The notes beneath the pieces are model-generated. The model was not told the DNA's origin. It saw only the letters and a program-made list of their open reading frames with translations, and did no database searches. Below are positions 29,134 through 63,375 of a DNA stretch of 64,000 nucleotides, piece by piece (within the stretch, counting starts at the first letter, position 1; each line of letters opens with the position of its first letter). Made by a program: the position numbers and the translations under genes. Source of the stretch: Macrostomum lignano (Eukaryota); the NCBI GenBank assembly GCA_002269645.1, contig NIVC01002291.1, forward strand, positions 1-64,000, given 5' to 3'.

Positions 29134-32029
29134 TACCTTACCTTACCTTAGACTTACCTTATCATGGCGCGTTGCGGCGCACAAAATCTTTTCTTCATGG
29201 CGCACGGCGCACAGTGCTCAAAAGCCATCAAAATAGTTCCGGCGCACACTGTGCTAAAATATAAAATATTTTAAAATATAAAATAAAATATAAAAATACT
29301 AATATCGTCAGTCAATCTTTTACACTGCGGAGCCTCTCTGACTCAGAAGTTGCAGAAGTCTGCAGACTCAATTGTAAACATTAGGCCTATCCAAATTTGA
29401 CAGTCAATAGAAGACTTGTCTTGACACCTCAATTAGGCCTAATAAAATTTATACTTAAAATGAAACATGAATTGCAGAAAATATGAAACTAAAAAATGTA
29501 AGCGAAATCAAGCTTGAAAAAACAAAGTGCCAGTTTAGCATCCGTAGGCAAAATTCAAAGATGTGAAAATTAAAAAATTAATACGCTATTATGACGTATG
29601 AGTGGTATGACACATGCTGGCAGAAACCTCAGACTAGATTTCAATGCTAAAATAGCATCATGACTAAGCCTAGCTTGTCAAAAATACGCTTTATGTTTGT
29701 ATTATAGTCAAAACTAATTGATCGAATCAATTGAATAAAAAGTTCTGCAGTCTAAAATAGAACAAAAAGGAAAAAACAGCTTTAGTTTCGTTTGGTTTCT
29801 TGTTGTTTTCCAGTAATCTAGTGATTTTAAACTCGGTGTAAAAATACAAGAACGTGCATTAGTTAAACAAAGCAGGCCCTACCCCAAACGCACTTAAAAA
29901 GATTTTAAGAAAAAAAATTCTACCGAAATTAAATTTTATTCCCTGTCCTATGTTGGTTAAATAAATAAAATTACTCTAAATGACCATATATATTGGTTTC
30001 AGTATATTATAAGTCAAAGTTTTGCCCTAAAATGCTAAGCCCTAAGCAAACGATAGGCCCTATTCATGGTCATGGAGTATGATATAGATACGTTTTTATC
30101 CATCTAATAAAAGACAAAGGGTAATAGATCAAAATACTTAGTTCCCTACCCTTGTAGTAGGCCTAGCCTAGTAGAGCATAATTTCAATTAGATAACTGCA
30201 AAATTGGCCTATAGTATTATGATAGACCGCAAATAAATGATTTAGAAAAAAAATTATTTAAGGTTGGGTTTTTGTGTGTAGTGTCCCTATGCACCCTGAA
30301 TTTTGAAATTTCATCTTGAAGTTGAAATTATATGTTTGATTTAGCTGCAGTCTGTCTTTTCTTGCAATCTATTTTTTTAAACAAGAAAAAAGAAAAATTG
30401 TACTCAAAGCTCCAAAAAATGCATCTTAAAATTGGGCAAAGCCAAAGGGTATGATTTTGTACCTTGCTTTTGACAAAAAAACAGATTTAAGCAAACTAGG
30501 GCTAGGCCATATAAATTAATGAAGTCTTAGGGCCTAGTCTAGGCCTATTTGGTATCAACTAATTAAATATTGATTTGTCTTTTTTAATTAAGCCTAAGCC
30601 TAAGTGTGCTAAGCCTATTATTAGATCAGACATAGTACTTTACCTTAAATAACAACTTATTTTTTTCTTGTTGATCAATTGCTACAAAAGTAATAATAAA
30701 TAAATTATTAGGCTTAGCCTGTTAAATATGGGACATTGTCATAGCCATAGGTTGCATTTCAAAGGTGTAGGTAGGCATAAATGCTACTTGTTGGCAATGT
30801 TTGAGGCATTGGCATTAGCCAATAGGCAGTTAACAAAATTCTAAGTGTATGTTTGCCTTTGTCAATAGGCTAAAGTGCTTGCAACATTAGCAGTAGGCCT
30901 AGGCCCCTACTGTAGCATAGCATCCCTATATTAGCCATTTTGCTTAGTTGTAAATAGTATCAAAGCTCATCACAACTCATCATATCACCAATGCTCATCA
31001 CAATATTTATTAGCCATTCTAGCTAGCACTAGGTGCCCTCAATGGTTAAAATAGCAAGGCAAGATCATTAGCATAGCCAAATATGCTAAGCTGCCTCAGC
31101 CTCTCTAATTGTCATTGATCTAGGCTCTATTGCTGCAGCATGAAGCTGTCATCATTAGAAAGGAGAGCAGTCTATAGCACCTAGTCCAAGTACTAAGACC
31201 ATATATATGCAACCCCCCCTTGATTTACATCGGCAATGCTAGGCCTACTTACTTTTTTTACCAAAAATGTGACTTACCTAAGTAAGAAACCTTAAAGCAA
31301 AAATAATGCAATTTTGGATAAATAGCAAAAGTAACATTGACTGTCTTATTAAGGCTAAATGCCTCATCATCTAATTTGTACTATATCTATATTCTTTTGA
31401 ATGGGCATTTTTGGAACTTATCTCAAAGTCTATCACAATTTACAATAGCCAGATTAGCTAGGTTGGCCAGTTGCAAATGTATAACTAGGACAAACCACAG
31501 ATATTAGTAGAATAACTATTATTCTAGTATCTAAGTGACAAATAAGAAAAGCACAAAAATATCTATCTTCCTGCCTAAAGCATCTTAGAGGATTTCTCAA
31601 AGAAATCCAATAGGCTATCTAGTATTAGCACAATAGCATTTATGTCACAATATAGCACCATAATAATGGAAATTGCCATATTTGAGATATACCCTTTTTG
31701 GCAATATGGTTATGGCATAATAAGAAAAAAGAAACATATGGTTCATAAAAATATTAAAAAATACTTCATAGCCTAAAAAGCTTCAAATAAGTTTTATTAG
31801 CCTATGATAGACTTAGATAGGATATTCCTAGTATATTTAAGCATGCAAGTAGTCAGTATTGTTGAGTGCAAAAGCCAAGCAATTATTCTTAAATATATAA
31901 AACAAGCTGTTGAAACCCGCGGAATTTGAACCCGGGGAATTCCAATCCCCGGAACTATTTTTGCATGTATTCTGAAATCTGAGCCCATCTGAAACAAAAA
32001 CTTGTTAATAGTTAGTTAGTAGGAACTAA

Positions 32030-32830: not shown

Positions 32831-34654
32831 TCTCCACTCTCAACTGCCCCTCAGCCATAAGCAGGATTCTTTTCTGGCCTTTGAGGTAAAAGTCTGCCCA
32901 TTCCTGCTTGGAAAGCCAGTTTGTGGGACGTAGTACTCTCATGGCTGTTCTCATGCTTTGATCATGTCATTTTTCTTGCCAATTTGCAAGCCCTGAAAAT
33001 AATTTGTGTATCTTCAGCTCCACTGCAGTCTGCATCAATCTAACAACCAAGGAAATACGCATTTCTTAGGAGGCCATTTAAATTTTAAAGTACCTTTAAG
33101 AGAAACCTTAAATTTCCATGATGTGACTAATTTAGTAGAGTTGTATTGCATTGCATCGCCTTTTCATAAATCTTTCGCTTTTACAAACCATGCTGGATTA
33201 CCCTGATTTGCCATCCACTGTTAAACTGCTGCAGAGTTTGCCTATACAGAGGACGGTGGTTAGAATTTCTCACTAAAATGTTATGGATGGCTAAATGTAG
33301 CCTCTCAACGGGGGGTGCAGAGAAGGCCATAAACAAAGCTATTCCAAAACACTGTACATTTTCTATGTACATTCAGTCCTACCGCCTGATCCTTCGTCTG
33401 GCTCTGGGGGAATGAGTGAGTGAGTGGCACAAACAACAGAAAAAGCAGACAAACTTCACATGCTTACAGTTTCTGTTCTGATTGAGTTAGAGAGTTGAAA
33501 CTTTACATTTAGACAGAGAATGAATCAAAGAAGAATTGTGTTAAGTTAGAAGTCAATCGCTTCACGTGGAGCAAACTTATGGCAACCGAAAGTTAGGCAT
33601 TTTAAAACCTGATTCACACCCTTTGCCCAGATCGGGAAAGAGAGGCAGGCGGGCGAAGGTTGGGGTGGCTGCCTTGCTGAAAAAAACAACATAACTTTAA
33701 AAGTGCACAGCGGCTTTCAGGATTAACTTTGAGATTTGAAATTTTACAGGATTGTGTCAAAATAGTTGAAAATTGCCTGTGTCAAATTTGAAGAGAATCG
33801 GTAGAAGTAGAGCGGCGCTATGGAGGATTTAGTGAAAAAATCGCGCATTTTGAGCAGTTTTTTGCACTTTTAGGTGGGAAGACTCAAATTTAGGAAATTT
33901 TAAGGTAGCCTAAGACATTCTCCGTAGTAAGTTTAGGGTGGGTGTAAAGTTAGGTATAATTTGGTTGAGCGGTTTGGGAGTCCATAGCGATCAAAATTGT
34001 CCACACACAGACACACACACACACAGAGTTTTGATTTTTATAGTTAGAGATGGCATAGTGTTCTATGGCGAGCCTAAAGTATCTATTCATCTTGGCTATT
34101 TGCCACATTAGAATATTTATTTTAAGAGGGCATAATAAAACCAATTTGATAAGAAGGATAAATATAGTATTTTATTAGTTACTCTAATTAAGCCTAAAGA
34201 TCATACATGTGTAACCTTGGGAATCACCCAGCTATCTCTATTGTTAACATACCCATGAAAGTCACTATTGGCTAAGAGCAGTCATGTGAATACTATTCTG
34301 TCCAATAGCAGCTTATATGTATATGTTGCTAATAGAAATAGCCAAATGAATCCCTAGGTTATGCCCAAGCATGCTAAGTATATAAATAGATAAATAACTT
34401 TTAAATCTTGTCATTTTCAGCTTTAGTTAATCTAAATATACTAAATAGCATTCTATACTTATAAGTAAAACTCCAAATCTTATTTTAGTTACAATGCTAC
34501 TGTTTTAGGCCTATAGCATATTTAGCATATTCAATGCTAAATTTCTATGTCATTTCATTCAATTTTTGGCAAAAGGCAATAAGGGTCTATATTTCTGAAA
34601 AATTAAGATTTGTAGGTCTATTAATATAGGAATAAACTTAGAAGTTAGGTCCTA

Positions 34655-37375: not shown

Positions 37376-40300
37376 ATGGCTACCTCCGGTGCGAGTGGGG
37401 ATGCTGGTGCCAGCGGATCTGGGTAATTTGCTGTTAGGCATTTTATTTTATCGATTTATTTCGCCTTTTAGAAGCAGCCTGTTGCATTATTGAAGCAATT
37501 TCAAATTTTAGATCTGGGCCTAGCTATCAACCAAATAAAAGGCTGCAACAGACTCAAGCTCAAGTTGATGAGGCAAGTGGTTAATACTCATATTGTATTA
37601 GACTGTTAGAGTTAGTAATTGTTCTTTAGGTACAGCTTCACGCCTTCCACCTCCCCGCCAGGTTGTCGGTATTATGCGCGTCAACGTTGAAAAAGTGATG
37701 CAACGCGATGAAAAGATTTCTGACTTGAATGAGCGAGCTGGTAAGTGGCTAATTTACACTTTCAAAACCTACCGCTGTGTTCCTACCGTTATGTCTTCTC
37801 TATGCATTTGTGTTAGTCCCCTATTTATGATAAACATTGGCGCTAACCTTCACTTACTTTCGCACTACTGGAAGAATATCTTTGGCCCTGTTAATCAATG
37901 TTGTCTTCTTTAATTTTAATTAGCTGTTTCTTTATTTGTGTTGTCTTTGCTAATTATTGCGTATCCTGCTGTTAACTAGGCCACCCCCTACTTATAGTAG
38001 TTTGCAGCTTAAACAGAATCAATCAATGACCAGAAAGCATCAGTGAGATTCCTCATCTCATCCTGTACCAGAAGGAATTAATGAGATTTCTCATCTCATC
38101 CTGTACCAGAAGAAATTAATGAGATTTCTCATCTCATCCTGTACCAGAAGGAATTAATGAGATTTCTCATCTCATCCTGTACCGGAAGGAATTAGTGAGA
38201 TTCCTCATCTCATTCTGTACCGGAAGGAATTAATGAGATTTCTCATCTCATTCTGTACCGGAAGGAATTAATGAGATTCCTCATCTCATCCTGTACCAGA
38301 AGGAATTAATGATATTCCTCATCTCATCCTGTACCAGAAGGAATTAATGAGATTTCTCATCTCATCCTGTACCAGAAGGAATTAATGAGATTCCTCATCT
38401 CATCCTGTACCAGAAGGAATTAATGAGATTCCTCATCTCATTCTGTACCGGAAGGAATTAATGAGATTCCTCATCTCATCCTGTACCAGAAGGAATTAAT
38501 GAGATTTCTCATCTCATTCTGTACCAGAAGGAATTAATGAGATTTCTCATCTCATCCTGTACCAGAAGGAATTAATGAGATTTCTCATCTCATCCTGTAC
38601 CAGAAGGAATTAGTGAGATTCCTCATCTCATTCTGTTGATATTTCTCATCCTGTGCCAGAAGGAGTTGGTAAGGTTTCTCATCTCATCTTGTACCAGAAG
38701 GAATTTCTGAGATTCCTCATCTCATCCTGTACCAGAATCAGTGAGATTTCTCATCCTGTCCAAGGCAAAACGAATGCCCCTTGTCATTTGCACCAAGACT
38801 ATAATATGTACCAAGACTAAACCCCGCTTACCGGCTGCACCACACGCCTCAGACGCCCTTCAGGCTGGCGCCTCCCGCTTTGAAGCCAGCGCCGGCCGTC
38901 TAAAACGAAAGTATTGGTGGCAAAACACCAAGGTACTGTGCTGCGAGTTGCCCGGCATGACTTTGAGTCGCTAATGCTGATTTAAGAGAGTAGAGAGTTA
39001 AATGATTGGCTCGGTTTTTGCGATTTTTTTAAACTACCAATTTATAAATTTTATCCAATCAACTGATTAAATGAGAATCATTGTTGACTTCCAACCTGCT
39101 TGACTATTCTTGGCTAACACCCTCCTAGATCTTCGAAAATCGGAATTCCTCAGTTCCTTAAATTAGAATAAGCAGCCAACATCTCATCTCCTCAGTTGCT
39201 GGGCCACCCTCTCAGATCCTCAGTTGCTGGTCCACCCTCTCAGATCCTCAGTTGCTGGTCCAGCCTCTCAGATCCTCAGTTGCTGGTCCAGCCTCTCAGA
39301 TCCTCAGTTGCTGGTCCAGCCTCTCAGATCCTCAGTTGCTGGTCCAGCCTCCCAGATCCTCAGTTGCTGGGTCAGCCTCCCAGATCCTCAGTTGCTGGTC
39401 CAGTCTCCCAGATCCTCAGTTGCTGGTCCAGTCTCCCAGATCCTCAGTTGCTGGTCCAGCCTCCCAGATCCTCAGTTGCTGGGCCAGCCTCCCAGATCCT
39501 CAGTTGCTGGTCCAGTCTCCCAGATCCTCAGTTGCTGGTCCAGTCTCCCAGATCCTCAGTTGCTGGTCCAGCCTCCCAGATCCTCAGTTGCTGGGCCAGC
39601 CTCCCAGATCCTCAGTTGCTGGTCCAGTCTCCCAGATCCTCAGTTGCTGGTCCAGCCTCCCAGATCCTCAGTTGCTGGGCCAGCCTCCCAGATCCTCAGT
39701 TGCTGGTCCAGCCTCCCGGATCCTCAGTTGCTGGTCCAGCCTCCCGGATCCTCAGTTGCTGGTCCAGCCTCCCGGATCCTCAGTTGCTGGTCCAGCCTCC
39801 CGGATCCTCAGTTGCTGGTCCAGCCTCCCAGATCCTCAGTTGCTGGTCCAGCCTCTCAAATCCTCAGTTGCTGGTCCAGCCTCCCAGATCCTCAGTTGCT
39901 GAGACAGCCTCGCAGATCCTCAGTTGCTGGGCCGCCCTTCAGATCCCCAGATTGAGCAACCAACATCGCAGATCCTAAACAGTAGTTAATTCTGTCCTAT
40001 AATCGAGAAATTGTGTATGATGCAGCCTTGCAGTACATTGTTTTGCTTCGATTGATTGCATTTTATCAACAATTTATACCTGCAATTAGCATGCTCACTG
40101 AACAAACCAATATCAATGGTTATTCAGCATAAAGTTCTACACTGATTTGCATTCACTTTTTAATTGCATTGCATTTTGCCACTAACAGACACTCTGCGCA
40201 TTGGGACGCAACAATTTTCTAATGTTGCCACCAGAATGAAACGAAAATACTGCTGGCAGAATGCCAAGGTTGCTCAATGCTTTTTATATACATATAACAT

Positions 40301-42579
40301 GCTTTTGAGTTTTGCTAGTAAAAATTAAGACCAAATTGTGTGCTGGGTTATCTTGACAGTAATTACTCGAAAAGTAACTCATCTAACCTTGCGTATATCA
40401 ATGCACTCGTGCTTCTCAAAAATTGTAACCAGGAGTTTTTTATTTAACTTTTATCTGTACCCCGGCGCATATATTTTATGTATGACCTGAATTGTCACGG
40501 GAAGTTAACACCAGCTAAAGCCCTTCGAAATGTTATTACAGTTATTTTTCACTCTGAAGATTTCACAAAATACAGAAATCTTCTATTTAGATTGCGTGGG
40601 CTGCCAGCCTCCCAGATCCTCAGTTGCTGGGCCAACCTCCCAAATCCTTAGTTGCTGGGTCAGCCTCCCAGATCTCCAGTTACTGGGCCAGCCTCCCAGA
40701 TCCTCAGTTGCTGGGCCACCCTCCCAAATCCTGAGTTGCTGGGCCAGCCTTCCAGATCTTTAGTTGCTGCACAAGCCTCCAAGATCCTCAGTCGGTGGAC
40801 CACCCTCCCAGATCCTCAGTTGCTGGGCCACCCTCTCAGATCCTCAGTTGCTGGTCCACCCTCCCAGTTCCTCAGTTGCTGGGCCAGCCTCCCAGTTCCT
40901 CAGTTGCTGGGCCAGCCTCCCAGATCCTTAGTTGCTGGGCCACCCTCCCAAATCCTCAGTTGCTGGGCTAGTCTCCCGGATCCCCAGTTGCTGGGCCAGC
41001 CTCCCAGATCCTCAGTTGCTGGGCCACCCTCCCAGTTCCTCAGTTACTGGGCCAGCCTCCCAGATCCTCAGTTGCTGGGCCAGCCTTCCAGATCCTCAGC
41101 TGCTGGGCCACCCTCCCAGTTCCTCAGTTGCTGGGCCAGCCTCCCAGTTCCTCAGTTGCTGGGCCAGCCTCCCAGATCCTTAGTTGCTGGGCCAGCCTCC
41201 CAAATCCTCAGTCGCTGGGCTAGTCTCCCGGATCCCCAGTTGCTGGGCCAGCCTCCCAGATCCTCAGTTGCTGGGCCAGCCTTCCAGATCCTTAGTTGCT
41301 GGACCAGCCTCCAAGATCATCAGTCGGTGGACCACCCTCCCAGATCCTCAGTTGCTGGGCCAGCCTACCAGATCTCCAGTTACTGGGCCAGCCTCCCAGA
41401 TCCTCAGTTGCTGGGCCAGCCTCCCAGTTCCTCAGTTGCTGGGCCAGCCTCCCAGATCCTGAGTTGCTGGGCCAGCCTCCCAGATCCTCAGTTGCTTGGC
41501 CAGCTTCCCAGATCCTGAGTTGCTGGGCCAGCCTTCCAGATCCTTAGTTGCTGCACAAGCCTCCAAGATCCTCAGTCGGTGGACCACCCTCCCAGATCCT
41601 CAGTTGCTGGGCCAGCCTCCCAGATCCTCAGTTGCTAGGCCAGCCTCCCAGATCCTCAGTTGCTAGGCCAGCCTCCCAGATCCTGATGCACCTGTAAAAA
41701 AGCTTTCATTGGTCTTTTAGTGGGAAGAAGGAAAAATGGCATATAACAACAAATCCATCTAAAAACGAACAGAAGTCATGCACTCAGACTTTGCTCCATT
41801 TTGCCAATGTTTTTTCAATGCTCGTTTTTACCTGCATAATCCAGTTTAACATGCAACAGTGAGAGTTTTCTGACTCGCCAATGCTAAATAACAGTATTTG
41901 ATTTTTTTTAAAGTTCCAGGCACATGCAGTACATCTAGTTTAAATTGTTTGTTTCAGATGATGCTCATCATCGGTGTCATTGTGGTTATCATCATACTCA
42001 TCATAATCAGTGAGTTCGGCCGGTCCGTTTTTCAGTGGGCTATGACCGAATCGATTTTAGTGGGTTATGACCGATCCTATTACAGTGGGTTATGACCGAT
42101 CCAATTTCAGTGGGTTATGACCGATCCGACTTCAGTGGGGTATGACCGATCCAATTTCAGTGGGTTATGACCGATCCGACTTCAGTGGGGTATGACCGAT
42201 CCAATTTCAGTGGGTTATGACCGATCCGACTTCAGTGGGGTATGACCGATCCAATTTCAGTGGGTTATGACCGATCCGATTTCAGTGGGTTATGACCGAT
42301 CCGACTTCAGTGGGGTATGACCGATCCAATTTCAGTGGGTTATGACCGATCCTACTTCAGTGGGTTATGACCGATCCTACTTCAGTGGGTTATGACCGAT
42401 CCTACTTCAGTGGGTTATGACCGATCCTACTTCAGTGGGTTATGACCAATGCAACCCAATTTAACTCAGTCTACTCAAACTGTCACCACAATAAATTTTC
42501 AGTCTCGGTGGTTAGCAGCAACAAAGGCGGCGGCGGCGGCGGTGGCGGCGGCAGCCCCACATCGGCGCCTGGTCGATAG
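37376..42579 (+). CDS. VAMP: synaptobrevin / VAMP (R-SNARE), ~131 aa
   Basis: Exons 37376-37422, 37512-37572 (GC donor), 37662-37740, 38853-38932, 41958-42009, 42503-42579; 396 nt. Protein: [131 protein letters not shown]; classic synaptobrevin SNARE motif, YWW and TM helix. Confidence 0.96.
38042..38762. repeat. intronic minisatellite, 38-bp unit GAGATTTCTCATCTCATCCTGTACCAGAAGGAATTAAT, ~18 copies
   Basis: Direct inspection. Confidence 0.95.
39190..39977. repeat. 28-bp minisatellite family (CAGATCCTCAGTTGCTGGGCCAGCCTCC), array 1
   Basis: Direct inspection; same family at 40598-41686, 43608-44063, 45923-46374 (+51391-51402), 53265-53665, 55427-55852. Confidence 0.96.
40189..40268 (+). CDS. 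VAMP: alternative (probably mutually exclusive) VAMP exon 4b, [27 protein letters not shown]
   Basis: ACTAACAG| acceptor and |GTTGCT donor; 80 nt with phase 1 in and phase 0 out, the same as exon 38853-38932; open frame, clearly paralogous. Confidence 0.82.
40598..41686. repeat. 28-bp minisatellite family, array 2 (left boundary of the quadruplicated cassette)
   Basis: Direct inspection. Confidence 0.95.
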
Positions 42580-45500
42580 AGAATCCGACACGAAAACGGT
42601 CTGTAGAAGCTGACAAAAATTTAAATTCTGACAAGTTAAGCAGTTTGACAGAAAGTCAAAGTATTCAAGCTGCGCTTAGATAATTTCTTTTTCGAGATAT
42701 TTTGGCACCGTACTTACCTTGCTAATTTAAAAAAAGCTCTCAGTCTCAGTAATTAATGTGTATTATTAGCAATTGCAATAAATGATAAAAATTTTGGAAT
42801 TGATAATCAAAATATCCTACTGTACATCTGTTCATTAGTAGTGCTTTTTGCGTATGTATAATTTGTTATTTTCCTTGTCTAAACAGTTTTCTGATTTGGT
42901 CACTAATTCCTTTGTTCGTTTAACGCGTGATATGCGGCATTTTGGCTATTGAGTAGCGTTGGTAAGAGAGGCCTGGTCAGTCTTCCTTCTAAAGAATTTC
43001 TAAATAAGCGCTACTGTTCTCAAAAAGTTGATTTACATAAACATAAACAAGCTTTTCTATACTGTTTGATACATCGGCTTTCTAAAATATAATGCCGAAA
43101 AAATTAGACTTTTTTGTGTCTTTAAGTAAATTTATTTTCAATAATAAATCTGCCTATGATGGGGGTTGAGCATTGTAGATGAAAATATCTCTATAGTAAT
43201 ATTGCGCATCTGTTGGTACTAATAGGTGGCAAATGTTCATTAGTAGTATGATAAAAGGTGAAAATTACGTGCTGCCGAATCATCATTTATATTATTGTAC
43301 CTATACTAGAGGGCAGGCAACCGTTACAGTAAAATGGGTCTGAAACTCGTTAAGAGCGTCACGCGTTAACATATTATATTTAGTGGGTTTCTAAAAATAG
43401 ATTTTGCTCGCTAATTCTGCCACTCGCAGTAATTGATCACTTTGGCTTGCTGAAGACCGTCTTCTGCAGATGCATAGCGCGCTCCTGTTAAGTGAGTACG
43501 GATTATAAAAGGTGGCGGGGCTAAGGCGCTTGTCAATCATTGGACTGATTGTAATTTTTTGTTTTCTTTGACGCCTGCGTGAAAAATGACCTGGGTCCCG
43601 GCGCTGCCAGATCCTCAGTTGCTAGGCCACCCTCTCAGATCCTCAGTTGCTGGGCCAGCCTCCCAGATCCTCAGTTGCTGGGCCAGCCTCCCAGATCCTC
43701 AGTTGCTGGGCCGCCCTTCAGATCCCCAGATTGAGCAACCAACATCGCAGATCCTCAGTTGCTGGGCCAGCCTCCCAAATCCTCAGTTGCTGGGCCAGCC
43801 TCCCAGATCCTCAGTTGCTGGGCCAGCCTCCCAGATCCTCAGTTGCTGGGCCAGCCTCCCAGATACTCAGTTGCTGGGCCAGCCACCCAGATCCTCAATT
43901 GCTAGGCCAGTCTCCCAGATCCTCAGTTGCTGGGCCAGTCTCCCAGATCCTCAGTTGCTGGGCCAGCCTCCCAGATCCTCAGTTGCTGGGCCAGTCTCCC
44001 AGATCCTCAGTTGCTGGGCCAGTCTCCCAGATCCTCAGTTGCTGGGCCAGCCTCCCAGATCCTGATGCACCTGTAAAAAAGCTTTCATTAGTCTTAGTGC
44101 GAAGAAGGAAAAATGGCATATAACAACAAATCCATCTAAAAACGAACAGAAGTCATGCACTCAGACTTTGCCCCAGTTTGCCAATGTTTTTTTCAATGCT
44201 CGTTTGTACTAGCATAATCCAGTTTAACATGCAACAGTGAGAGTTTTCTGACTCGCCAATGCTAAATAACAGTATTTGATTTTTTTAAAGTTCCAGGCAC
44301 CTGCGGTACATCTAGTTTAAATTGTTTGTTTCAGATGATGCTCATCATCGGTGTCATTGTGGTTATCATCATACTCATCATAATCAGTGAGTTCGGCCGG
44401 TCTGTTTTTCAGTGGGCTATGACCGAATCGATTTTAGTGGGTTATGACCGATCCGATTTCAGTGGGTTATGACCGATCCGACTTCAGTGGGTTATGACCG
44501 ATCCGATTTCAGTGGGTTATGACCAATCTTATTACAGTGGGTTATGACCGATCCAATTTCAGTGGGTTATGACCAATCCTATTACAGTGGGTTATGACCA
44601 ATCCTATTTCAGTGGGTTATGACCGATCCGACTTCAGTGGGTTATGACCGATCCAATTTCAGTGGGTTATGACCGATCCGATTTCAGTGGGTTATGACCG
44701 ATCCGACTTCAGTGGGTTATGACCGATCCAATTTCAGTGGGTTATGACCGATCCGATTTCAGTGGGTTATGACATTTAACATCAGTCTACTCAAACTGTC
44801 ACCGCAATAAATTTTCAGTCTCGGTGGTCAGTAGCAACAAAGGCGGCGGCGGCGGCGGTGGCGGCGGCAGCCCCACATCGGCGCCTGGTCGATAGAGAAT
44901 CCGACACGAAAACGGTCTGTAGAAGCTGACAAAAATTTAAATTCTGACAAGTTAAGCAGTTTGACAGAAAGTCAAAGTATTCAAGCTGCGCTTAGATAAT
45001 TTCTTTTTCGAGATATTTTGGCACCGTACTTACCTTGCTAATTTAAAGAAAGCTCTCAGTCTCAGTAATTAATATGTATTAATAGCAATTGCAATAAATG
45101 ATAAAAATTTTGGAACTAATAATCAAAATATCCTACTGTACATCTGTTCATTAGTAGTGCTTTTTGCGTATGTATAATTTGTTATTTTCCTTGTCTAAAC
45201 AGTTTTCTGATTTGGTCACTAATTCCTTTGTTCGTTTAACGCGTGATATGCGGCATTTTGGCTATTGAGTAGCGTTGGTAAGAGAGGCCTGGTCAGTCTT
45301 CCTTCTAAAGAATTTCTAAATAAGCGCTACTGTTCTCAAAAAGTTGATTTACATAAACATAAACAAGCTTTTCTATACTGTTTGATACATCGGCTTTCTA
45401 AAATATAATGCCGAAAAAATTAGACTTTTTTGTGTCTTTAAGTAAATTTATTTTCAATAATAAATCTGCCTATGATGGGGGTTGAGCATTGTAGATGAAA

Positions 45501-46374
45501 ATATCTCTATAGTAATATTGCGCATCTGTTGGTACTAATAGGTGGCAAATGTTCATTAGTAGTATGATAAAAGGTGAAAATTACGTGCTGCCGAATCATC
45601 ATTTATATTATTGTACCTATACTAGAGGGCAGGCAACCGTTACAGTAAAATGGGTCTGAAACTCGTTAAGAGCGTCACGCGTTAACATATTATATTTAGT
45701 GGGTTTCTAAAAATAGATTTTGCTCGCTAATTCTGCCACTCGCAGTAATTGATCACTTTGGCTTGCTGAAGACCGTCTTCTGCAGATGCATAGCGCGCTC
45801 CTGTTAAGTGAGTACGGATTATAAAAGGTGGCGGGGCTAAGGCGCTTGTCAATCATTGGACTGATTGTAATTTTTTGTTTTCTTTGACGCCTGCGTGAAA
45901 AATGACCTGGGTCCCGGCGCTGCCAGATCCTCAGTTGCTAGGCCACCCTCTCAGATCCTCAGTTGCTGGGCCACCCTCTCAGATCCTCAGTTGCTGGGCC
46001 ACCCTCTCAGATCCTCAGTTGCTGGGCCAGCCTCCCAGATCCTCAGTTGCTGGGCCAGCCTCCCAGATCCTCAGTTGCTGGGCCAGCCTCCCAGATCCTC
46101 AGTTGCTGGGCCGCCCTTCAGATCCCCAGATTGAGCAACCAACATCGCAGATCCTCAGTTGCTGGGCCAGCCTCCCAAATCCTCAGTTGCTGGGCCAGCC
46201 TCCCAGATCCTCAGTTGCTGGGCCAGCCTCCCAGATCCTCAGTTGCTGGGCCAGCCTCCCAGATACTCAGTTGCTGGGCCAGCCTCCCAGATCCTCAATT
46301 GCTAGGCCAGTCTCCCAGATCCTCAGTTGCTGGGCCAGTCTCCCAGATCCTCAGTTGCTGGGCCAGCCTCCCAG

Positions 46375-49300
46375 CAAGGACTACTTAAGTATCGTTTATA
46401 GAAGGACGCTGCACTCGCGGTTCGTGTAATTTTTTTTGAAGGCCAATTTTCGCCGAAAAATACATTAACGAGATACAAAAAATTCACGATTTTCATCTTC
46501 AATGGCTTGCTCAGACTGACTACAACCCTGCTGAAAAGAAAAAACTGCTGAAACTTATCAAAAAGACCTAGTGTATTCGCTCCTCTATTGTATTTCGCCA
46601 AGTTAGTGTCCTTGACACGTTTACTTTTAAATACTTCGTATTTTTTCGAGGGTTTTCAATTCTGTAATGTTAAATGTTAAAGGTTGGATTAAAGTGTTAG
46701 TTTCTCTCAATAATCAGTAGTTTCTTTAGCATTCTATGATGACTGCTTTCTATGTCTTTATTTTTTTGGTAAATTTAAATTAGCTATAGACATTCTATAT
46801 TAAATGTTAGTCTATACCCTGGCTATGCCTGATATATAATAATATCTAGGGCCTACTATGCTTTTTTAGCATGTTCTACAAAAATGTTGTGTAGAAAGGA
46901 CCTACTGATTAGTTTATGAGTAGATCGTTATAAAGTATTATTCTTAATTTGAAGGTAGATAGATATTAGATACTTGCATATTGTATAGAAGGTACTAATT
47001 TTACTATTCTGTCAAATATCTGTAGATTAGGCTTCTTAAACGGTTCTACTGGATACAAAAGTTCTATTTTCAGACTTGTCTTGAAACTTTATATTTTATT
47101 TAAATGATAGGCCTAACAACATATTGAATTTATTTCTGCTGTTTGGAGAGCAGTTTTTTAACCTAGTCTAGTTTAATGGAACCAAGATATATTCAATACT
47201 CAGGCCTTGCATTGAATTTAAAATATAAATATTTATATATAGAAAGTGATTCTAAAGGAAAATGCGTATAATAGACTTTAGAAGACAAATTTTCAACTTT
47301 AGTAATACTATTGAAGTGATTTAGTATAGAATTGATTATATTGGCCTGTTGGGATAAAAGCAATACAGTATTGTAGCAATTTTTTTACTAGATATAATGT
47401 ATAGAAGCTGTATATATTTCTTTTTGTTAGCTTCAGAATTTCTGCAATGCCAATGAAATGCTGTCTTCCAAAGTGTACAAGTAACTACAAATCTGGTGAG
47501 AAGGTGACAGTGTATAGCTTTCCAAAGGATAAAGAAGACTACAGCATGTGGATCCGAGCTTTGCCACCAAATGTTAAGGTATGGTGCTATTGCTGCTATT
47601 GCATATTCTTGTCTTGCTTAATTCACATGCTAATGGAACATTAGTACAATATGATATAATACTTACTGTTTTAGAGTCCATCTAAATACATGGGCATTTG
47701 CCAAAAACATTGGCCAACAAATGCACCAATGTTAAAGGTCAAGCGATTCATGCGCCCTATGGACCCACCAAGTGTATTCCCAAATCTTCCAACAGGCTCT
47801 CTTCGCCTGACTGAGCCAAGTAAGTATATCTCATAGCAAGGTTAAATATTACAGTTTGTACCAAATGATAGGCTTTCTATAATATTTTACTTAATTAAGT
47901 TTTTGTCTGATTTCATACCTTACATATTATTATTCTTACTTCAGAGCACTCTAGAGATGTTCAACGCCGCGGTATTCTGTTAAACCAGCGGGCTCAAATT
48001 GCTGATGAAATGGACTCATTCAATGAGACTGATCGGATTCACTCATGGAGTTCCTTTGTTGAGAAATCTGCCACCCTTGACTTCGTTGCAAATGAGTGGA
48101 TAGTGCAGCGTGACGAATCATGTGTGCGATTTGTCCTTCTTTGGGAACTAAGAGTTGAATGCTCAATTTCAGTCATGTCCGACTTTTCTGTTATTGCAAA
48201 TCGTCATAACACCCCAGTGTCAGTGTCTGAGCTGCTGGGTTTTCAACATCGACTTGAGCGCTACAGCCAATTGGAAGCAGTACAAAATAAAGTTCGACAA
48301 GCTGAAGTAAATCCAATCAAGGAATTCAATGCATATTTGGACGCACTACAGCCACTTTGTCAGGAGCTGCAGAACCCGCGCCATTCATTCCTTGTTCGAC
48401 AGCTGCAACTGAGTGTTGTTCAGCATCATGGCGTACGGTATGCTGCAAATGATATAATGACAGCTGCCAGAATGTACTTCACCAGTCGTGCTGGCTATCG
48501 TGCAATGAGAGAGTTCGCCTGTCTACCACATCCAGACACTCTCAAACGTCATCTGGGTGGACTTGGCAGCATTGGAACCGACACCGACTGTCAGCAAATT
48601 GTCAAGTCGAATTTCGAACACAACACACCGTCTCAGTGCCTGTGCTCAATCATCTTTGATGAAGTGTATGTGCAACCTTCACTTCGTCTCAAAGGTGTCC
48701 ATGTAGTTGGCTTTGCTGAGGATGTTCCACAGAAGCTTGCTCGGACTATTCTCGCCATTATGGTAAAACCATTTATGGGCGCACCTGCGTTTGTTGCCAG
48801 ACTTGTGCCAATCTATAGTTTACAGCCTGCGTTTTTACACAGACAGGTTGTACGACTTATTGAAATTGTCCACGGCTGTGGTGGTACAGTTGTGAGCTTC
48901 ATTTGCGATAATCACTTCACTAACCAGAACTGTTTCAAACTGTTTCATTGCGACACAAACACACCATGGCTTGCCGAAAACCCTGCAGACGCAGAGAAAC
49001 CATTGTTTCTGTTGTTTGACACAGTGCATTTGTTTAAGAATATAAGAAATAATTGGTTCACTCAAGCGCACAAGGAGATCGATTTTCACCCATCAGCAGA
49101 TAAGCAGGAACGTGTTTGCCGAGCACGCTGGAATGATATTGTTGAAATCGAGGAGCGATCCCGTGGACAAGTAGTTCGCCCGACTTCAGTCAACTCTGTC
49201 GCGTGCAATCCGTCTCCACTGGAGCGACAAAAGGTGTCACTAGTTGTCGACATCTTCAACGAGAAGACGGTTGCCGCACTTCGTGTTAACGGTCGCCATG

Positions 49301-51390
49301 ACTCAGCCGACTTTGTGGACCATGTGGTCACCTTTTGGAAAATAGTTAATGTTAAATCACCAGAATCACACGTTGCCTTGAATGACAAACTTAGGGCTCC
49401 AATTACGTCGGAAGAATCTAGCAGCTTGACACATTTACTTAATTTCTCCGCACTGGTGGAGCGCATGCCGGGTGGACGAGGTGCGGGACGCGGTCGGTCG
49501 CTCACCACAGAGACGCGCAACGCTTTAATCCAGACAACAAGAGGTCTGGTGGGCCTCAGCAGACACCTTCTAACCAACCATCGATTTTCTTACGTTCTTC
49601 TTGGTGAGTTCTTTGCATTATTTACATGCAGCAATCAGTTTTTGAATAATTGTTGCTAGGGAATGAATTTAATGAATTGTGGGGATGCAGGTCACGGCTA
49701 TCTAATGGGTCACGAAATTGTCTTTAAGGTGTACTGCAATCAGACAGATTGGAGGCCGAGTTCGCTCTCTACCGCCAGGGCCACGGCGGGTGTTACTACA
49801 TAACAGTCGAGCAAGTTATGGCCAGTGCTCGGCTGCACCGAATGAAATTGTACGGAGCGCTTCAGAACAGCTTTGAGGCTCATGAGCCGGCGACATGCTG
49901 TTCCGATGGGATGAAGGACTCTGATCTAGAGGTGTTTGATCAGCTTCAAGACAAGATCAGCCACAATACAGATGAGGAGAATGCTTCTTTGTACTATATT
50001 TCCGGTTACGTTGCTGCTAAAGAGCATCTTCCAGAAGTTTTTGAAGCATTTGCAACTGAGTTTCCTGGCGGTAGCGAATTTACATCGCTGCTATCTCGTG
50101 GCAAGCTCCGGCACCCGCCAGAGTGGCTTTTAGTTTTCTCCAGCCTGTGCTATGCTTTTTTCTCCTCTGTCAAGATCCACTGCGTCAACTATTGTGTCCG
50201 ATCTTTTATTAACGTTTTTGAAGCTTTCATGGATGTAACTGTTTCAGATCCAGCTCAGGTTAGCCGCATTTCCAGGAGGTTAGCTAACACATTTTTTAAA
50301 GGACTCGTGCGTCGTGATTCGGACCATGTACGAGAGACGCCCGGCAGTGGACGGCGTCTGCGAAAGTTAGCATCAAGTTAGTTATGAGCTGTTTGTACGC
50401 TTTTTGAGAAATCCGTGACATTCTATCAACACACCGAGTTCGTATAAAACTTGAACACCCATTGTACACTTAGACACCTCTAATTTAAACAAACGAAGTG
50501 GACACTGGAAAATATCGAAATATCCAACCAAAAATGCAATAAGCCAAAATCGGAGGCAACATAGCTCGTAGAATTGAAGCGAACATTGTTAATTGATTGA
50601 GCATGTAATTTGACCCATAGTCCATGGTTGTCCATGTTTTATACAGACCCAATTCACATTCACGTCATTGAATATGCTTATGCTTTCATAAGTTGGTTTA
50701 TGCATCTGTTGCTGCTTTCATACGTTGGTTTAAACATTTGTTGCTGCTTTCATAAGTTGGTTTCTGCATTTTACTGCTGTTGCCTACCCAATAGTTGCCA
50801 CAGTTTCTATACACTATACACTATACACAGTCTTATATTTGCAGCCTTACATACATATTTGCCTTACTGTAGCTATCAATTGAGATTAAAGTACAATGAG
50901 CTGCTGTGCAACAAGCAACCAGTTCAGTTCAACATTTTTTGTTTCCAGTCCAACAACGATACATCGATTGTTATCAGCACTGGCATTGTGCCAGTTTCTC
51001 TGCTTTTGCTCTTTGTTATTTTATTGTTGAAAAGATCAGGGATGGCTTTTGAAAAGTACAGACTGACGGGCTTCGTTCTTTGTTAATCTCATCTCATTTT
51101 AATTGGATTACATTAGCTCAATTGTCGGAATTATCCTTTAAATATCCTAGCTTTATTGTTCTATAATAAAGAAGGGGGTAACAGTACCTTGCTGTACATT
51201 TCTCGCGAATACATGTAGTTGCAGCCGAAACTGTTCACTCATCTAAAAGAGGAATAAATTCTGAGCAACCCCGTGAAAAAACTAGACCTCTACATGCAAC
51301 CATTTAAAAATAACAGCATTTTGAAAAATGGCCTTCAAAAAAATCTACACCATTCGGGAGTGCAGCGTCCTTCTACTTAAGTAGTCCTTG
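46375..51390 (+). mobile_element. P-superfamily (THAP-domain) DNA transposon, 5016 bp, apparently full length
   Basis: TIR CAAGGACTACTTAAGTA[TCGTTTATA, left only]GAAGGACGCTGCACTC...TTTTTTGAAGGCCA(A/T)TTTT, ~65 bp and imperfect; 8-bp TSD CCTCCCAG at 46367-46374 and 51391-51398; CA...TG termini. Confidence 0.95.
47447..50381 (+). CDS. P-element/THAP9-like transposase, 4 exons, ~862 aa
   Basis: Exons 47447-47578, 47675-47819, 47945-49603, 49729-50381, GT-AG, phases 0/1/1 consistent, no stops. THAP (CCLPKC...FPKD...W...CQKHW...PPSVF); RNase H-like motifs IIFDEVYV, ICDNHFTN, FDTVHLFKNIRNNW, QSDRLEAEF; C-terminal LYYISGYVA. Confidence 0.92.
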
Positions 51391-54300
51391 CCTCCCAGAT
51401 CCTGATGCACCTGTAAAAAAGCTTTCATTAGTCTTAGTGCGAAGAAGGAAAAATGGCATATAACAACAAATCCATCTAAAAACGAACAGAAGTCATGCAC
51501 TCAGACTTTGCCCCAGTTTGCCAATGTTTTTTTTCAATGCTCGTTTGTACTAGCATAATCCAGTTTAACATGCAACAGTGAGAGTTTTCTGACTCGCCAA
51601 TGCTAAATAACAGTATTTGATTTTTTTAAAGTTCCAGGCACCTGCGGTACATCTAGTTTAAATTGTTTGTTTCAGATGATGCTCATCATCGGTGTCATTG
51701 TGGTTATCATCATACTCATCATAATCAGTGAGTTCGGCCGGTCTGTTTTTCAGTGGGCTATGACCGAATCGATTTTAGTGGGTTATGACCGATCCGATTT
51801 CAGTGGGTTATGACCGATCCGACTTCAGTGGGTTATGACCGATCCGATTTCAGTGGGTTATGACCAATCCTATTACAGTGGGTTATGACCGATCCAATTT
51901 CAGTGGGTTATGACCAATCCTATTACAGTGGGTTATGACCAATCCTATTTCAGTGGGTTATGACCGATCCGACTTCAGTGGGTTATGACCGATCCAATTT
52001 CAGTGGGTTATGACCGATCCGATTTCAGTGGGTTATGACCGATCCGACTTCAGTGGGTTATGACCGATCCAATTTCAGTGGGTTATGACCGATCCGATTT
52101 CAGTGGGTTATGACATTTAACATCAGTCTACTCAAACTGTCACCGCAATAAATTTTCAGTCTCGGTGGTCAGCAGCAACAAAGGCGGCGGCGGCGGCGGT
52201 GGCGGCGGCAGCCCCACATCGGCGCCTGGTCGATAGAGAATCCGACACGAAAACGGTCTGTAGAAGCTGACAAAAATTTAAATTCTGACAAGTTAAGCAG
52301 TTTGACAGAAAGTCAAAGTATTCAAGCTGCGCTTAGATAATTTCTTTTTCGAGATATTTTGGCACCGTACTTACCTTGCTAATTTAAAGAAAGCTCTCAG
52401 TCTCAGTAATTAATATGTATTAATAGCAATTGCAATAAATGATAAAAATTTTGGAACTAATAATCAAAATATCCTACTGTACATCTGTTCATTAGTAGTG
52501 CTTTTTGCGTATGTATAATTTGTTATTTTCCTTGTCTAAACAGTTTTCTGATTTGGTCACTAATTCCTTTGTTCGTTTAACGCGTGATATGCGGCATTTT
52601 GGCTATTGAGTAGCGTTGGTAAGAGAGGCCTGGTCAGTCTTCCTTCTAAAGAATTTCTAAATAAGCGCTACTGTTCTCAAAAAAGTTGATTTACATAAAC
52701 ATAAACAAGCTTTTCTATACTGTTTGATACATCGGCTTTCTAAAATATAATGCCGAAAAAATTAGACTTTTTTGTGTCTTTAAGTAAATTTATTTTCAAT
52801 AATAAATCTGCCTATGATGGGGGTTGAGCATTGTAGATGAAAATATCTCTATAGTAATATTGCGCATCTGTTGGTACTAATAGGTGGCAAATGTTCATTA
52901 GTAGTATGATAAAAGGTGAAAATTACGTGCTGCCGAATCATCATTTATATTATTGTACCTATACTAGAGGGCAGGCAACCGTTACAGTAAAATGGGTCTG
53001 AAACTCGTTAAGAGCGTCACGCGTTAACATATTATATTTAGTGGGTTTCTAAAAATAGATTTTGCTCGCTAATTCTGCCACTCGCAGTAATTGATCACTT
53101 TGGCTTGCTGAAGACCGTCTTCTGCAGATGCATAGCGCGCTCCTGTTAAGTGAGTACGGATTATAAAAGGTGGCGGGGCTAAGGCGCTTGTCAATCATTG
53201 GACTGATTGTAATTTTTTGTTTTCTTTGACGCCTGCGTGAAAAATGACCTGGGTCCCGGCGCTGCCAGATCCTCAGTTGCTAGGCCACCCTCTCAGATCC
53301 TCAGTTGCTGGGCCACCCTCTCAGATCCTCAGTTGCTGGGCCACCCTCTCAGATCCTCAGTTGCTGGGCCAGCCTCCCAGATCCTCAGTTGCTGGGCCAG
53401 CCTCCCAGATCCTCAGTTGCTGGGCCAGCCTCCCAGATCCTCAGTTGCTGGGCCGCCCTTCAGATCCCCAGATTGAGCAACCAACATCGCAGATCCTCAG
53501 TTGCTGGGCCAGCCTCCCAAATCCTCAGTTGCTGGGCCAGCCTCCCAGATCCTCAGTTGCTGGGCCAGCCTCCCAGATCCTCAGTTGCTGGGCCAGCCTC
53601 CCAGATCCTCAGTTGCTGGGCCAGTCTCCCAGATCCTCAGTTGCTGGGCCAGCCTCCCAGATCCTGATGCACCTGTAAAAAAGCTTTCATTAGTCTTAGT
53701 GCGAAGAAGGAAAAATGGCATATAACAACAAATCCATCTAAAAACGAACAGAAGTCATGCACTCAGACTTTGCCCCAGTTTGCCAATGTTTTTTTCAATG
53801 CTCGTTTGTACTAGCATAATCCAGTTTAACATGCAACAGTGAGAGTTTTCTGACTCGCCAATGCTAAATAACAGTATTTGATTTTTTTAAAGTTCCAGGC
53901 ACCTGCGGTACATCTAGTTTAAATTGTTTGTTTCAGATGATGCTCATCATCGGTGTCATTGTGGTTATCATCATACTCATCATAATCAGTGAGTTCGGCC
54001 GGTCTGTTTTTCAGTGGGCTATGACCGAATCGATTTTAGTGGGTTATGACCGATCCGATTTCAGTGGGTTATGACCGATCCGATTTCAGTGGGTTATGAC
54101 CAATCCTATTACAGTGGGTTATGACCGATCCAATTTCAGTGGGTTATGACCAATCCTATTACAGTGGGTTATGACCAATCCTATTTCAGTGGGTTATGAC
54201 CGATCCGACTTCAGTGGGTTATGACCGATCCAATTTCAGTGGGTTATGACCGATCCGATTTCAGTGGGTTATGACATTTAACATCAGTCTACTCAAACTG

Positions 54301-55255
54301 TCACCGCAATAAATTTTCAGTCTCGGTGGTCAGCAGCAACAAAGGCGGCGGCGGCGGCGGTGGCGGCGGCAGCCCCACATCGGCGCCTGGTCGATAGAGA
54401 ATCCGACACGAAAACGGTCTGTAGAAGCTGACAAAAATTTAAATTCTGACAAGTTAAGCAGTTTGACAGAAAGTCAAAGTATTCAAGCTGCGCTTAGATA
54501 ATTTCTTTTTCGAGATATTTTGGCACCGTACTTACCTTGCTAATTTAAAGAAAGCTCTCAGTCTCAGTAATTAATATGTATTAATAGCAATTGCAATAAA
54601 TGATAAAAATTTTGGAACTAATAATCAAAATATCCTACTGTACATCTGTTCATTAGTAGTGCTTTTTGCGTATGTATAATTTGTTATTTTCCTTGTCTAA
54701 ACAGTTTTCTGATTTGGTCACTAATTCCTTTGTTCGTTTAACGCGTGATATGCGGCATTTTGGCTATTGAGTAGCGTTGGTAAGAGAGGCCTGGTCAGTC
54801 TTCCTTCTAAAGAATTTCTAAATAAGCGCTACTGTTCTCAAAAAAGTTGATTTACATAAACATAAACAAGCTTTTCTATACTGTTTGATACATCGGCTTT
54901 CTAAAATATAATGCCGAAAAAATTAGACTTTTTTGTGTCTTTAAGTAAATTTATTTTCAATAATAAATCTGCCTATGATGGGGGTTGAGCATTGTAGATG
55001 AAAATATCTCTATAGTAATATTGCGCATCTGTTGGTACTAATAGGTGGCAAATGTTCATTAGTAGTATGATAAAAGGTGAAAATTACGTGCTGCCGAATC
55101 ATCATTTATATTATTGTACCTATACTAGAGGGCAGGCAACCGTTACAGTAAAATGGGTCTGAAACTCGTTAAGAGCGTCACGCGTTAACATATTATATTT
55201 AGTGGGTTTCTAAAAATAGATTTTGCTCGCTAATTCTGCCACTCGCAGTAATTGA

Positions 55256-62200: not shown

Positions 62201-63375
62201 AAGTCTCAGAGTCAGGTGAGCCCTCCAAGGACTCTGGCTCACCTTGTTCATGTAGATGGCCTCCAGCTCGACGCGGACGGTGTCCACCTTATCGTCGTAC
62301 TCCTTCTGGATCTCGTGGATGGCTTGGCCCAGCTCCGTCTTCCAGAATTCGCGGCTGTCGTCTTCGTCTCGTTTGATGAGCACGTACAGCTCCTTCAGCT
62401 CCTGCGGCGGGGCGATGGGGGTTGAGATTCGGCTTCAGTCCCACCTGTGGCGTGATTATCTCTCTTCCCCTTCACTCTACCCTCAACTCTACCCTCAACT
62501 CTCCTTCTCCTCTCCCTTGTCCCCTCCCTCCCTTTCTCCCTTCTTCCCTCCCTCTTCCTCTCCCCTCTCTCTCGTTCTCGCCTCTCCTTTCTCCCCTCCC
62601 TCTCTTTCTCCCCTTGCTCTCCTCCCCCTCCTTTCTCCTTCCCTCTCCATCTCCCCTCTCCCTTGTCCCCTCCTTTCTCCCCTCCCTCTCCTGCATTAAA
62701 CTAAGGGGACAGAGCAGTGTTGGGCTATTCAGAGTACAGTAGTAGTACAGTACAGAGTACAGGGCTTGTAGCCTAGTGGTCAGAGCGTCGGACTCACGAC
62801 TTGAAGGTCGGGGGTTCGATTCCCGATCCCACTGGAACAATTTGTGTCCTTGAGCAAGACACTTAACTCTGCATTGCTTCAGTTCACCCAGCTGTAAAAT
62901 GGGTGCCAGCATTAGCTGGGGTAATTGAGGGTGTGTGTGGCGACCACCCAGTCCTTGGACTGAACAGCCGTACGCAGCCTTCAGATGCGCCGCGCAATAG
63001 CTGTGGCTGAGCTGTCGGTTGCACATCTGGCCCAATTGGGGCAGGTGTAATAAAAAAAAGTACAGTACTCCATGCATCTGCTGCTATCGCACCTGATCGT
63101 GCACCCGCTTCAAGAACTCGAGCTCCTCCCGCAGCGTCTGGTTCTCAGTCTGGGCGCCGATACGGGCCGCCGTCTCCGCGTCCAGATCCGTGTGCAGTCT
63201 GGCGATGTCGTCTTTCATCTTGATCAGCTGCTGCTTCACCCGGCCTTTCTCGTCCTCCAGATGGGCGAGACGGCGACGCAGCAGGGCGATCTCGCCGTCC
63301 CGGTCGGCCAGCTCGTGGTTGAGCCTGTCAATCTTCTCGTTGCAATGCTCGTTCTGGTTGTTGGAATCGTTCAGC
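55256..63375 (-). CDS. cytoplasmic intermediate filament protein with lamin-tail domain (protostome long-coil type); 5' end outside window
   Basis: Exons (5' to 3'): 63375-63093, 62401-62243, 61690-61565, 61179-60852, 57175-57033, 56135-55869, 55303-55256 (ERAMHLQKTVFSKPK*); phases consistent. Rod-end motif LLDAKISLELEIAAYKKLLDAE; LTD motifs KGNVCIDECSQDGACVKLRN, LSGWRIRRTVDG, VRLWA, TVLLNEEGQERA. Confidence 0.93.
56225..56990. repeat. intronic satellite, 16-bp unit CTG(T/C)CTGTCTCACCA(T/C), ~47 copies
   Basis: Direct inspection. Confidence 0.95.
58135..58735. repeat. intronic minisatellite, ~31-36-bp unit GGGCAGGGAGTGAG(CTG/G)TGGCTGCGAGACTGAT(AA/T)G
   Basis: Direct inspection. Confidence 0.93.
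59062..59312 (-). CDS. candidate alternative terminal exon of the IF gene (Gly/Ser/Gln-rich tail ending in a stop)
   Basis: TTCTTCCAG| acceptor in phase 1, matching the donor at 60852; reads IRGSGYSQQQQIVGSKNVVYGTTTSSSYEMRG(n)...VYSTPSGTNI*; no convincing phase-1 donor found. Confidence 0.6.
59420..59600. repeat. G-rich degenerate repeat (GGGGGAGGTGGCTGT)n
   Basis: Direct inspection. Confidence 0.8.
61226..61455. repeat. intronic minisatellite, 33-bp unit CTGATTCTCTCACCTATCAGTAATTAGTGGTTT, ~7 copies
   Basis: Direct inspection. Confidence 0.92.
62139..62147 (-). CDS. candidate 9-nt microexon (Tyr-Arg-Glu) in the IF gene
   Basis: CTCACATCTCCTTCCTGACAG|TATCGAGAG|GTGAGTTAG, frame-preserving between two phase-0 junctions. 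Confidence 0.5.
62761..63059 (+). mobile_element. tRNA-derived SINE, copy 2 (antisense in IF intron)
   Basis: A box TAGCCTAGTGG, B box GGTTCGATTCC, GTGTCCTTGAGCAAGACACTTAAC core, TAATAAAAAAAA tail; near-identical to 6652-6942. Confidence 0.9.

Follow-up and report, generated by a model that had tools for sequence, protein, structure and literature searches.

In vertebrates, the SNARE protein SNAP-25 is encoded by a gene with two tandem and mutually exclusive exons, 5a and 5b, which alter the end of the SNARE helix and the membrane region carrying the palmitoylated cysteines, with nine residues differing between the two versions (PMC2581893). A preliminary description of the DNA studied here named this pair as a precedent, as the published account bears out (PMC2581893), and it remains the described analogue of the arrangement reported below. 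We analyzed a 64,000-nt stretch of DNA (NIVC01002291.1, positions 1 to 64,000; hereafter the window) and found a synaptobrevin (VAMP) gene in which exon 4, encoding the C-terminal half of the SNARE motif, is present in two copies, 4a and 4b. These copies are probably a mutually exclusive exon pair that arose long ago by tandem duplication. The two systems differ in several respects. SNAP-25 is a Q-SNARE without a transmembrane (TM) anchor, and the use and phenotype of its alternative exons are proven, whereas the window gene encodes an R-SNARE, its alternative exons differ at 13 of 27 residues, a frame rule enforces their exclusivity, and their alternative use is predicted. Tomosyn was considered as an R-SNARE precedent and rejected, because its alternative exon 13 encodes part of a WD40 scaffold and not of a SNARE motif. 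Vertebrate VAMP5 (myobrevin) presumably reads ..KKCWEN.. where VAMP2 reads ..KYWWKN.., which places Cys-Trp at the same juxtamembrane position as in 4b; unlike 4b, VAMP5 is a separate gene and not a splice form.

The segment encoded by exon 4 is of functional interest. In synaptobrevin, layers +4 to +8 together with the Trp-Trp linker complete zippering and pass force to the membrane. Within the juxtamembrane linker, the two tryptophans act as a gate on this force transfer (PMC7815645). A splice switch between 4a and 4b would exchange this segment alone, would leave intact the N-terminal nucleation half as well as the anchor, and would thus provide a natural variant pair for asking how the membrane-near segment tunes release. 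To our knowledge, the segment has been studied in vertebrates only via engineered mutants.

The synaptobrevin gene in the window is complete, lies on the + strand, and consists of six exons that encode a brevin-type R-SNARE (Table 1). A tblastn search with the human VAMP2 sequence, whose residue and SNARE layer numbering is used throughout, matched exons 2, 3, 4a, 4b, and the TM exon. The zero-layer Arg is present in exon 3 (aligned to VLERDQKLSEL of VAMP2). Both isoforms, a and b (with 4a and 4b, respectively), match the Pfam family Synaptobrevin (PF00957) far above the curated cut-off of 26.4 bits, with scores of 114 and 105.1 bits, and in both a single C-terminal TM anchor immediately follows a basic linker with Trp, in which 4b retains the second Trp only. 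Intron 2 (37573-37661) is of the GC-AG type, with a GAG/gcaagt donor in place of GT, and AATAAA signals occur at 42777 and 43143, downstream of the stop codon in exon 6.

Exons 4a and 4b are both sited between exon 3 and the TM exon, are both 80 nt in length and bounded by AG and GT, and both run from phase 1 to phase 0. Their boundaries are cag/AC GCC CTT ... ACC AAG/gtactg for 4a and ctaacag/AC ACT CTG ... GCC AAG/gttgct for 4b, and the first codon takes its G from the end of exon 3 in each case. Within the 4.2-kb interval between exon 3 and the TM exon, these are the only two 80-nt windows that are open in frame and bounded by AG and GT. The exons are homologous: their local alignment scores 30, compared to 13.1 +/- 2.1 in shuffled sequences (none of 300 shuffles as high), with identity at 44 of 80 nucleotides (55%) and at 14 of 27 residues. 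Since the exon length of 80 nt is not divisible by three, the frame makes the two exons mutually exclusive. Spliced translation yields a 131-aa protein with either exon alone, a 105-aa product with a stop 16 codons into 4b when both are included, and a frameshifted 83-aa product when both are skipped. Aligned to VAMP2, 4a carries L, A, F, A, L at layers +4 to +8, where 4b carries L, T, F, A, M. All are hydrophobic or small in both exons; our family sample of 39 distinct canonical exon-4 peptides, drawn from approximately 200 VAMPs, contains neither Thr at +5 nor Met at +8. The position of VAMP2 Gln76, the P1 residue of the cleavage site for tetanus toxin and botulinum neurotoxin B, corresponds to codon 9 of 4a (38877-38879) and is R in 4a and Q in 4b, compared to Q in 37, A in two, and R in none of the 39 peptides. 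At the position of Trp89, 4b has Cys. The exon lengths and phases, the frame shift upon joint inclusion, and the alignment to VAMP2 (layers +4 to +8, R/Q at the toxin P1 position, and WW replaced by CW) therefore stand as given in the preliminary description.

Under this arrangement, each productive transcript would carry one copy of exon 4, and transcripts with both or neither would reach an early stop, encode no membrane-anchored protein, and be likely targets of nonsense-mediated decay. The two predicted 131-aa isoforms would have in common the N-terminus, the N-terminal half of the SNARE motif, the TM anchor, and the tail, and would differ in the part responsible for final zippering and for coupling of the helix to the membrane. 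The 4a form is probably the default, because the donor gttgct of 4b pairs with U1 less well than does gtactg of 4a and because the sequence of 4a is typical of the family. The 4b form would then be minor and specialized; it has Thr at +5, Met at +8, altered surface residues, and Cys for Trp89, and is predicted to differ in late zippering, in its surface, and in membrane insertion. From these substitutions, effects on fusion kinetics, regulator binding, or acylation may be expected, and the Cys of 4b could itself be acylated. A division between neuronal and gland use, a difference in toxin sensitivity, and palmitoylation of this Cys are speculation.

Several comparisons within this genome suggest that 4b has been maintained as coding sequence. 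Between 4a and 4b, 15, 18, and 9 of 26 codons are identical at positions 1, 2, and 3, respectively (Fisher p = 0.03); the proportion of nonsynonymous differences (pN) is 0.36-0.37, and that of synonymous differences (pS) is 0.76-0.78, which is saturated. When the 36 base differences were placed at random, a mean of 7.2 residues remained identical (P = 6e-5 for at least 14), and in 50,000 attempts no stop-free trial attained the observed BLOSUM score. The intron flanks of 4a and 4b have no similarity over the 120-330 nt compared on each side, with scores at or below the shuffle mean. Since the flanks are unrelated and the exons alike, the duplicated segment has decayed everywhere but inside the 80 nt. 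Moreover, the differences between 4a and 4b are located mainly at positions that vary within the family (mean entropy 0.92 vs. 0.23 bits, p = 0.012). We read these patterns as long-term coding constraint on 4b. The codon-position asymmetry, the exon-only conservation, the changes at family-variable positions, a Pfam score near that of 4a, and the second genome described next all indirectly favor the mutually exclusive pair put forward in the preliminary description; that 4b is spliced at present is what we infer from them.

Exon-4 clusters occur in VAMP genes beyond the window gene. When the genomic open reading frame (ORF) over 4b was searched against 1.84 billion cluster representatives, one match was a 65-aa ORF (P0205) on a 228-kb mollusc-like contig (ERZ22147071:ctg29577l in ENA; L047/L045). 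This contig has three tandem 80-nt copies of exon 4, all bounded by AG and GT and of equal phase, without a TM exon in between, and two tandem TM exons downstream; exons 1-3 lie beyond the contig end. It resembles the window gene in having tandem, in-phase exon-4 copies of 80 nt and differs in having three of them together with two TM exons. Copies 4.1 and 4.2 differ in the juxtamembrane linker only. Given their pS of 0.97, pN of 0.135, and unrelated flanks, both are under purifying selection. The third copy and 4b have in common an otherwise unseen Met84 (+8), the loss of Trp89, QQF, and ..WQNAK, and the pN between them (0.236) is below that between either of these b-type exons and any canonical exon 4 (0.34-0.46). 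Of all exons compared with 4b, the third copy has the smallest pN, the others ranging over 0.37-0.46. On 26 codons, common origin and convergence of the two cannot be separated. We consider it doubtful that the b-type form of exon 4, with Met at +8, ..WQNAK, and a replacement of the first juxtamembrane Trp, represents an old conserved module of lophotrochozoan synaptobrevins, common to the window animal and the mollusc-like genome. Retroelement-like ORFs were observed in the intron preceding the third copy.

Other observations weigh against the interpretation of 4a and 4b as a functional pair. The main alternative, which we regard as unlikely, is that 4b is an unused relic of the tandem duplication, i.e., a dead or dying pseudo-exon that may have been used formerly. 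Five family-invariant positions are altered in 4b (A69T, A74T at +5, E78S, L84M at +8, and W89C), among them a core layer and Trp89, and this loss could mean relaxed constraint. The donor gttgct is weak. The preliminary description noted a branch-point-like ACTAAC before the acceptor of 4b; the motif is present (40181-40186), but its branch A is only 4 nt from the exon, which does not fit normal branch-point spacing, and it was rejected as a branch point. CTGAT (40142-40146) and TTAAT (near -25) are better-placed candidates. All statistics on 4a and 4b rest on 26 codons, and a stricter null model, in which 4b has been neutral since its birth and 4a constrained, predicts a pS of approximately 0.54 from the observed pN, compared to the observed 0.76 over 17 synonymous sites, and is rejected only at approximately p = 0.03. 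Since this rejection is weak, the case for 4b also rests on its lack of indels and stops and on its kept splice sites. None of the approximately 200 retrieved VAMP proteins has a 4b-like exon-4 segment in the spliced product, and no 4b-type protein was found in any database searched; when 5.8 billion proteins were queried with the spliced 4a and 4b isoforms, no retrieved VAMP was nearer to 4b than to 4a, and none came from the window species. Scanning of metagenome contigs with 4b-specific peptide patterns found 41 VAMP loci, all of them lacking a 4b-like or second exon 4, and only one exon 4 is present at the loci of Macrostomum lignano (L001), a chiton, Biomphalaria, a thrips, and an annelid. 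However, 4b keeps an open frame, the exact length, and intact AG and GT between randomized flanks, neutral decay does not predict the codon-position asymmetry and the conservative changes, and a similar b-type exon is intact in the second genome. These tests are blind to a very recent loss of function, which may have occurred.

The exon plan of the window gene recurs at the M. lignano locus L001, whose exon 4 is identical to 4a at 22 of 27 residues. The two genes are at synonymous saturation (pS 0.70, pN 0.147); therefore, the missing 4b at L001 says little about the date of the duplication. The motif YQPN[KR]RL before the SNARE motif was found only in M. lignano and two further sequences, and the Gly-rich tail of the window protein resembles that of the M. 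lignano protein; both features make a flatworm a plausible source of the window. Several non-coding segments in the window (44-260 nt) are approximately 75-98% identical to segments near the synaptobrevin gene at L001. These were considered as a sign of close relatedness, and this interpretation was dropped, because the pS between the genes is saturated and the segments are non-coding repeats, one of them beside a tRNA-like match. They probably represent cores that are conserved within shared repeat families.

A further explanation is that 4b acts as a regulatory "poison" exon, such that inclusion of both exons lowers synaptobrevin output through the premature stop. Such a role would make use of the stop that double inclusion produces within 4b. 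It could also involve an RNA pairing: the 3' end of 4a (UUGGUGGCAAAA, 38914-38925) pairs over 12 bp, including one G-U, with 40174-40185, upstream of the 4b acceptor. None of the other windows among the 84 in the interval is as good a partner; the duplex energy is -21.5 kcal/mol, which 41 of 1,000 shuffles equal. When the exon interval was searched for docking or selector RNA structures, only four short inverted repeats were found, one of them being this borderline pairing, which might bear on the choice of exon. However, a poison exon needs no reading frame conserved in the phase that replaces 4a, and it is in exactly this phase that 4b retains the synaptobrevin heptad residues and the KRKY-W-QN-K linker. 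We consider this role improbable, and favor 4b as the alternative to 4a.

It is extremely improbable that the second copy of exon 4 is an assembly or haplotype artifact. Minisatellites abound in the region, and the gene has four copies of its 3' end, 99-100% identical to one another, possibly in part as an assembly problem. In contrast, 4a and 4b are far more diverged at the DNA level and have unique, unrelated flanks, whereas mis-assembly or uncollapsed haplotypes would give near-identical copies. The fourfold repeat is a unit of approximately 2.3 kb with the last two exons (5 and 6), present at 96-100% identity and made up of a 345-bp segment with exon 5, a 25-nt satellite, 1137 bp of unique sequence with exon 6, and a 28-nt satellite. 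The four copies of exon 5 are identical and those of exon 6 differ synonymously only. Either the unit was recently amplified in tandem through the satellites, or the repeat is an artifact of assembly. A 28-nt minisatellite (TCCTCAGTTGCTGGTCCAGCCTCCCAGA) trails exon 4a, exon 4b, and each of the exon 5/6 units, and it is a likely substrate of the unequal crossing-over behind the duplications of exon 4 and of exons 5/6.

Tandem exons that encode other parts of the protein were found in VAMP genes of several protostomes. In arthropods, genomic DNA of a thrips has tandem exons 3a and 3b (L003 3757-3834 and 4010-4087), and exon 3 duplicates are also found in gene models of spiders, an isopod, a mayfly, and a springtail (VVDIMRTNVEKV.. 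is among the copy sequences). One copy is similar to fly Syb and the other to nSyb. As with 4a and 4b, the duplicated exon encodes half of a SNARE motif; unlike them, it encodes the N-terminal one (layers -4 to +3), and the exon is 78-79 nt long, so that several gene models string both copies together. Deposited arthropod models that wrongly concatenate the copies have one and a half SNARE motifs. In three metagenome contigs (L027, L031, and L032), a further, more diverged exon-3 copy was observed approximately 3 kb downstream. We know of no published description of the arthropod pair.

In molluscs and annelids, it is the exon for the membrane anchor that is duplicated, within the same gene family and with the same sizes of exon 4 (80 nt) and exon 5 (52 nt) as in the window gene. 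Genomic DNA of Biomphalaria, a chiton, and the annelid Ridgeia contains two tandem 52-nt TM exons (5a and 5b), of the MM.. and MW.. types, and NCBI/RefSeq isoforms named "synaptobrevin" and "VAMP3-like" (P0128, P0131, and others) derive from one locus and have one TM exon each. No MW-type TM exon was found in the window. In the nematode Ditylenchus destructor, two models of approximately 225 aa (P0121 and P0122; top search score 247 bits) have two synaptobrevin domains each, as a result either of the fusion of tandem genes or of an error in annotation.

The preliminary description regarded the duplicated arrangement as not known in VAMP genes. This holds for exon 4, but not for tandem exons in general, given the arthropod exon 3 and the mollusc/annelid TM exon. 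The novelty is thus exon 4 as the duplicated segment, tandem alternative exons already existing elsewhere in these genes. Our literature search found no paper describing the arthropod exon 3, the mollusc/annelid TM-exon, or the exon-4 duplication in VAMP genes. If the b-type exon 4 were an old conserved module, which we consider doubtful, then protostome VAMP genes would, given the pairs of exon 3 and of the TM exon, be modular, with each segment of the fusion machinery open to swapping by splicing, such that fusion kinetics or clamp strength could be set per cell type. A 4a/4b switch, taken with the exon pairs of other phyla, would also suggest that exon duplication is a route of diversification for single-copy VAMP genes of invertebrates, whereas vertebrates and flies use separate genes; no paper on such a route was found in the literature search.

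Table 1. Features of the synaptobrevin locus in the window and of the loci compared with it.
Feature	Location	Strand	Description	Basis
Exon 1	window 37376-37422	+	start codon; donor gtaatt	sequence reading, 131-aa spliced translation
Exon 2	window 37512-37572	+	donor gcaagt	tblastn to VAMP2, sequence, spliced translation
Exon 3	window 37662-37740	+	N-terminal half of SNARE motif; zero-layer Arg; phase 1 end; donor gtaagt	tblastn, sequence, spliced translation
Exon 4a	window 38853-38932	+	80 nt; canonical C-terminal half of SNARE motif and juxtamembrane KRKYWW	tblastn, sequence, spliced translation
28-nt minisatellite array, 4a-4b intron	window 39175-39954	+		
Exon 4b	window 40189-40268	+	80 nt; diverged paralogue of 4a; acceptor ctaacag; weak donor gttgct	tblastn, sequence, alignment, spliced translation
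Second array of the 28-nt minisatellite, 4b-exon 5 intron	window 40603-41684	+		
Exon 5 (TM)	window 41958-42009	+	52 nt; donor gtgagt; first of four identical copies	tblastn, spliced translation
Exon 6, coding part	window 42503-42579	+	stop TAG 42577-42579	spliced translation
Exon 5/6 units	window 41685-44063, 44064-46374, 51404-53665, 53666-55853			
All arrays of the 28-nt minisatellite	window 39175-39954, 40603-41684, 43594-44063, 45910-46374, 53252-53665, 55413-55853		TCCTCAGTTGCTGGTCCAGCCTCCCAGA	
Segments matching surroundings of L001	window 5632-5886, 6845-6949, 31247-31376, 34202-34360, 62951-63052			
ctg29577l, copy 4.1	L047 3887-3966		..KLKNKMWWKNMK	
ctg29577l, copy 4.2	L047 6310-6389		..KLKRKYWWKNLK	
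ctg29577l, third copy	L047 17136-17215		EYLTMGAQQFEKSAVRMKRKYFWQNAK	
ctg29577l, tandem TM exons	L045 11248-11299, 13157-13208		MM and MW types; downstream of exon-4 copies	
Tandem TM exon pairs (molluscs, annelid)	L002 12762-12812 + 14811-14861; L046 18257-18307 + 19235-19285; L048 17318-17368 + 18283-18333			
Arthropod proteins with exon 3 duplicates	P0001, P0002, P0008, P0019, P0026, P0030, P0049, P0136			

The window is rich in minisatellites of 16-55 nt throughout. An insert of approximately 5 kb (46375-51403) with 53-bp inverted ends (46399-46451 and 51323-51375) separates the second and third exon 5/6 units. Its ORF (48010-49659, 549 aa) matches PF21787 (TNP-like/P-element transposase RNase H domain), and the insert is probably a DNA transposon of the P-element/THAP9 type. 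Upstream of the synaptobrevin gene is a large gene with TSP1 repeats and a cystine knot, similar to SCO-spondin or mucins (1317-8539, + strand); a search with a TSP1-repeat ORF near the synaptobrevin gene returned distant matches only. Downstream are an exon for an intermediate-filament rod (60730-61161, - strand) and a weak tRNA-like match (62762-62831) that is probably a short interspersed nuclear element.

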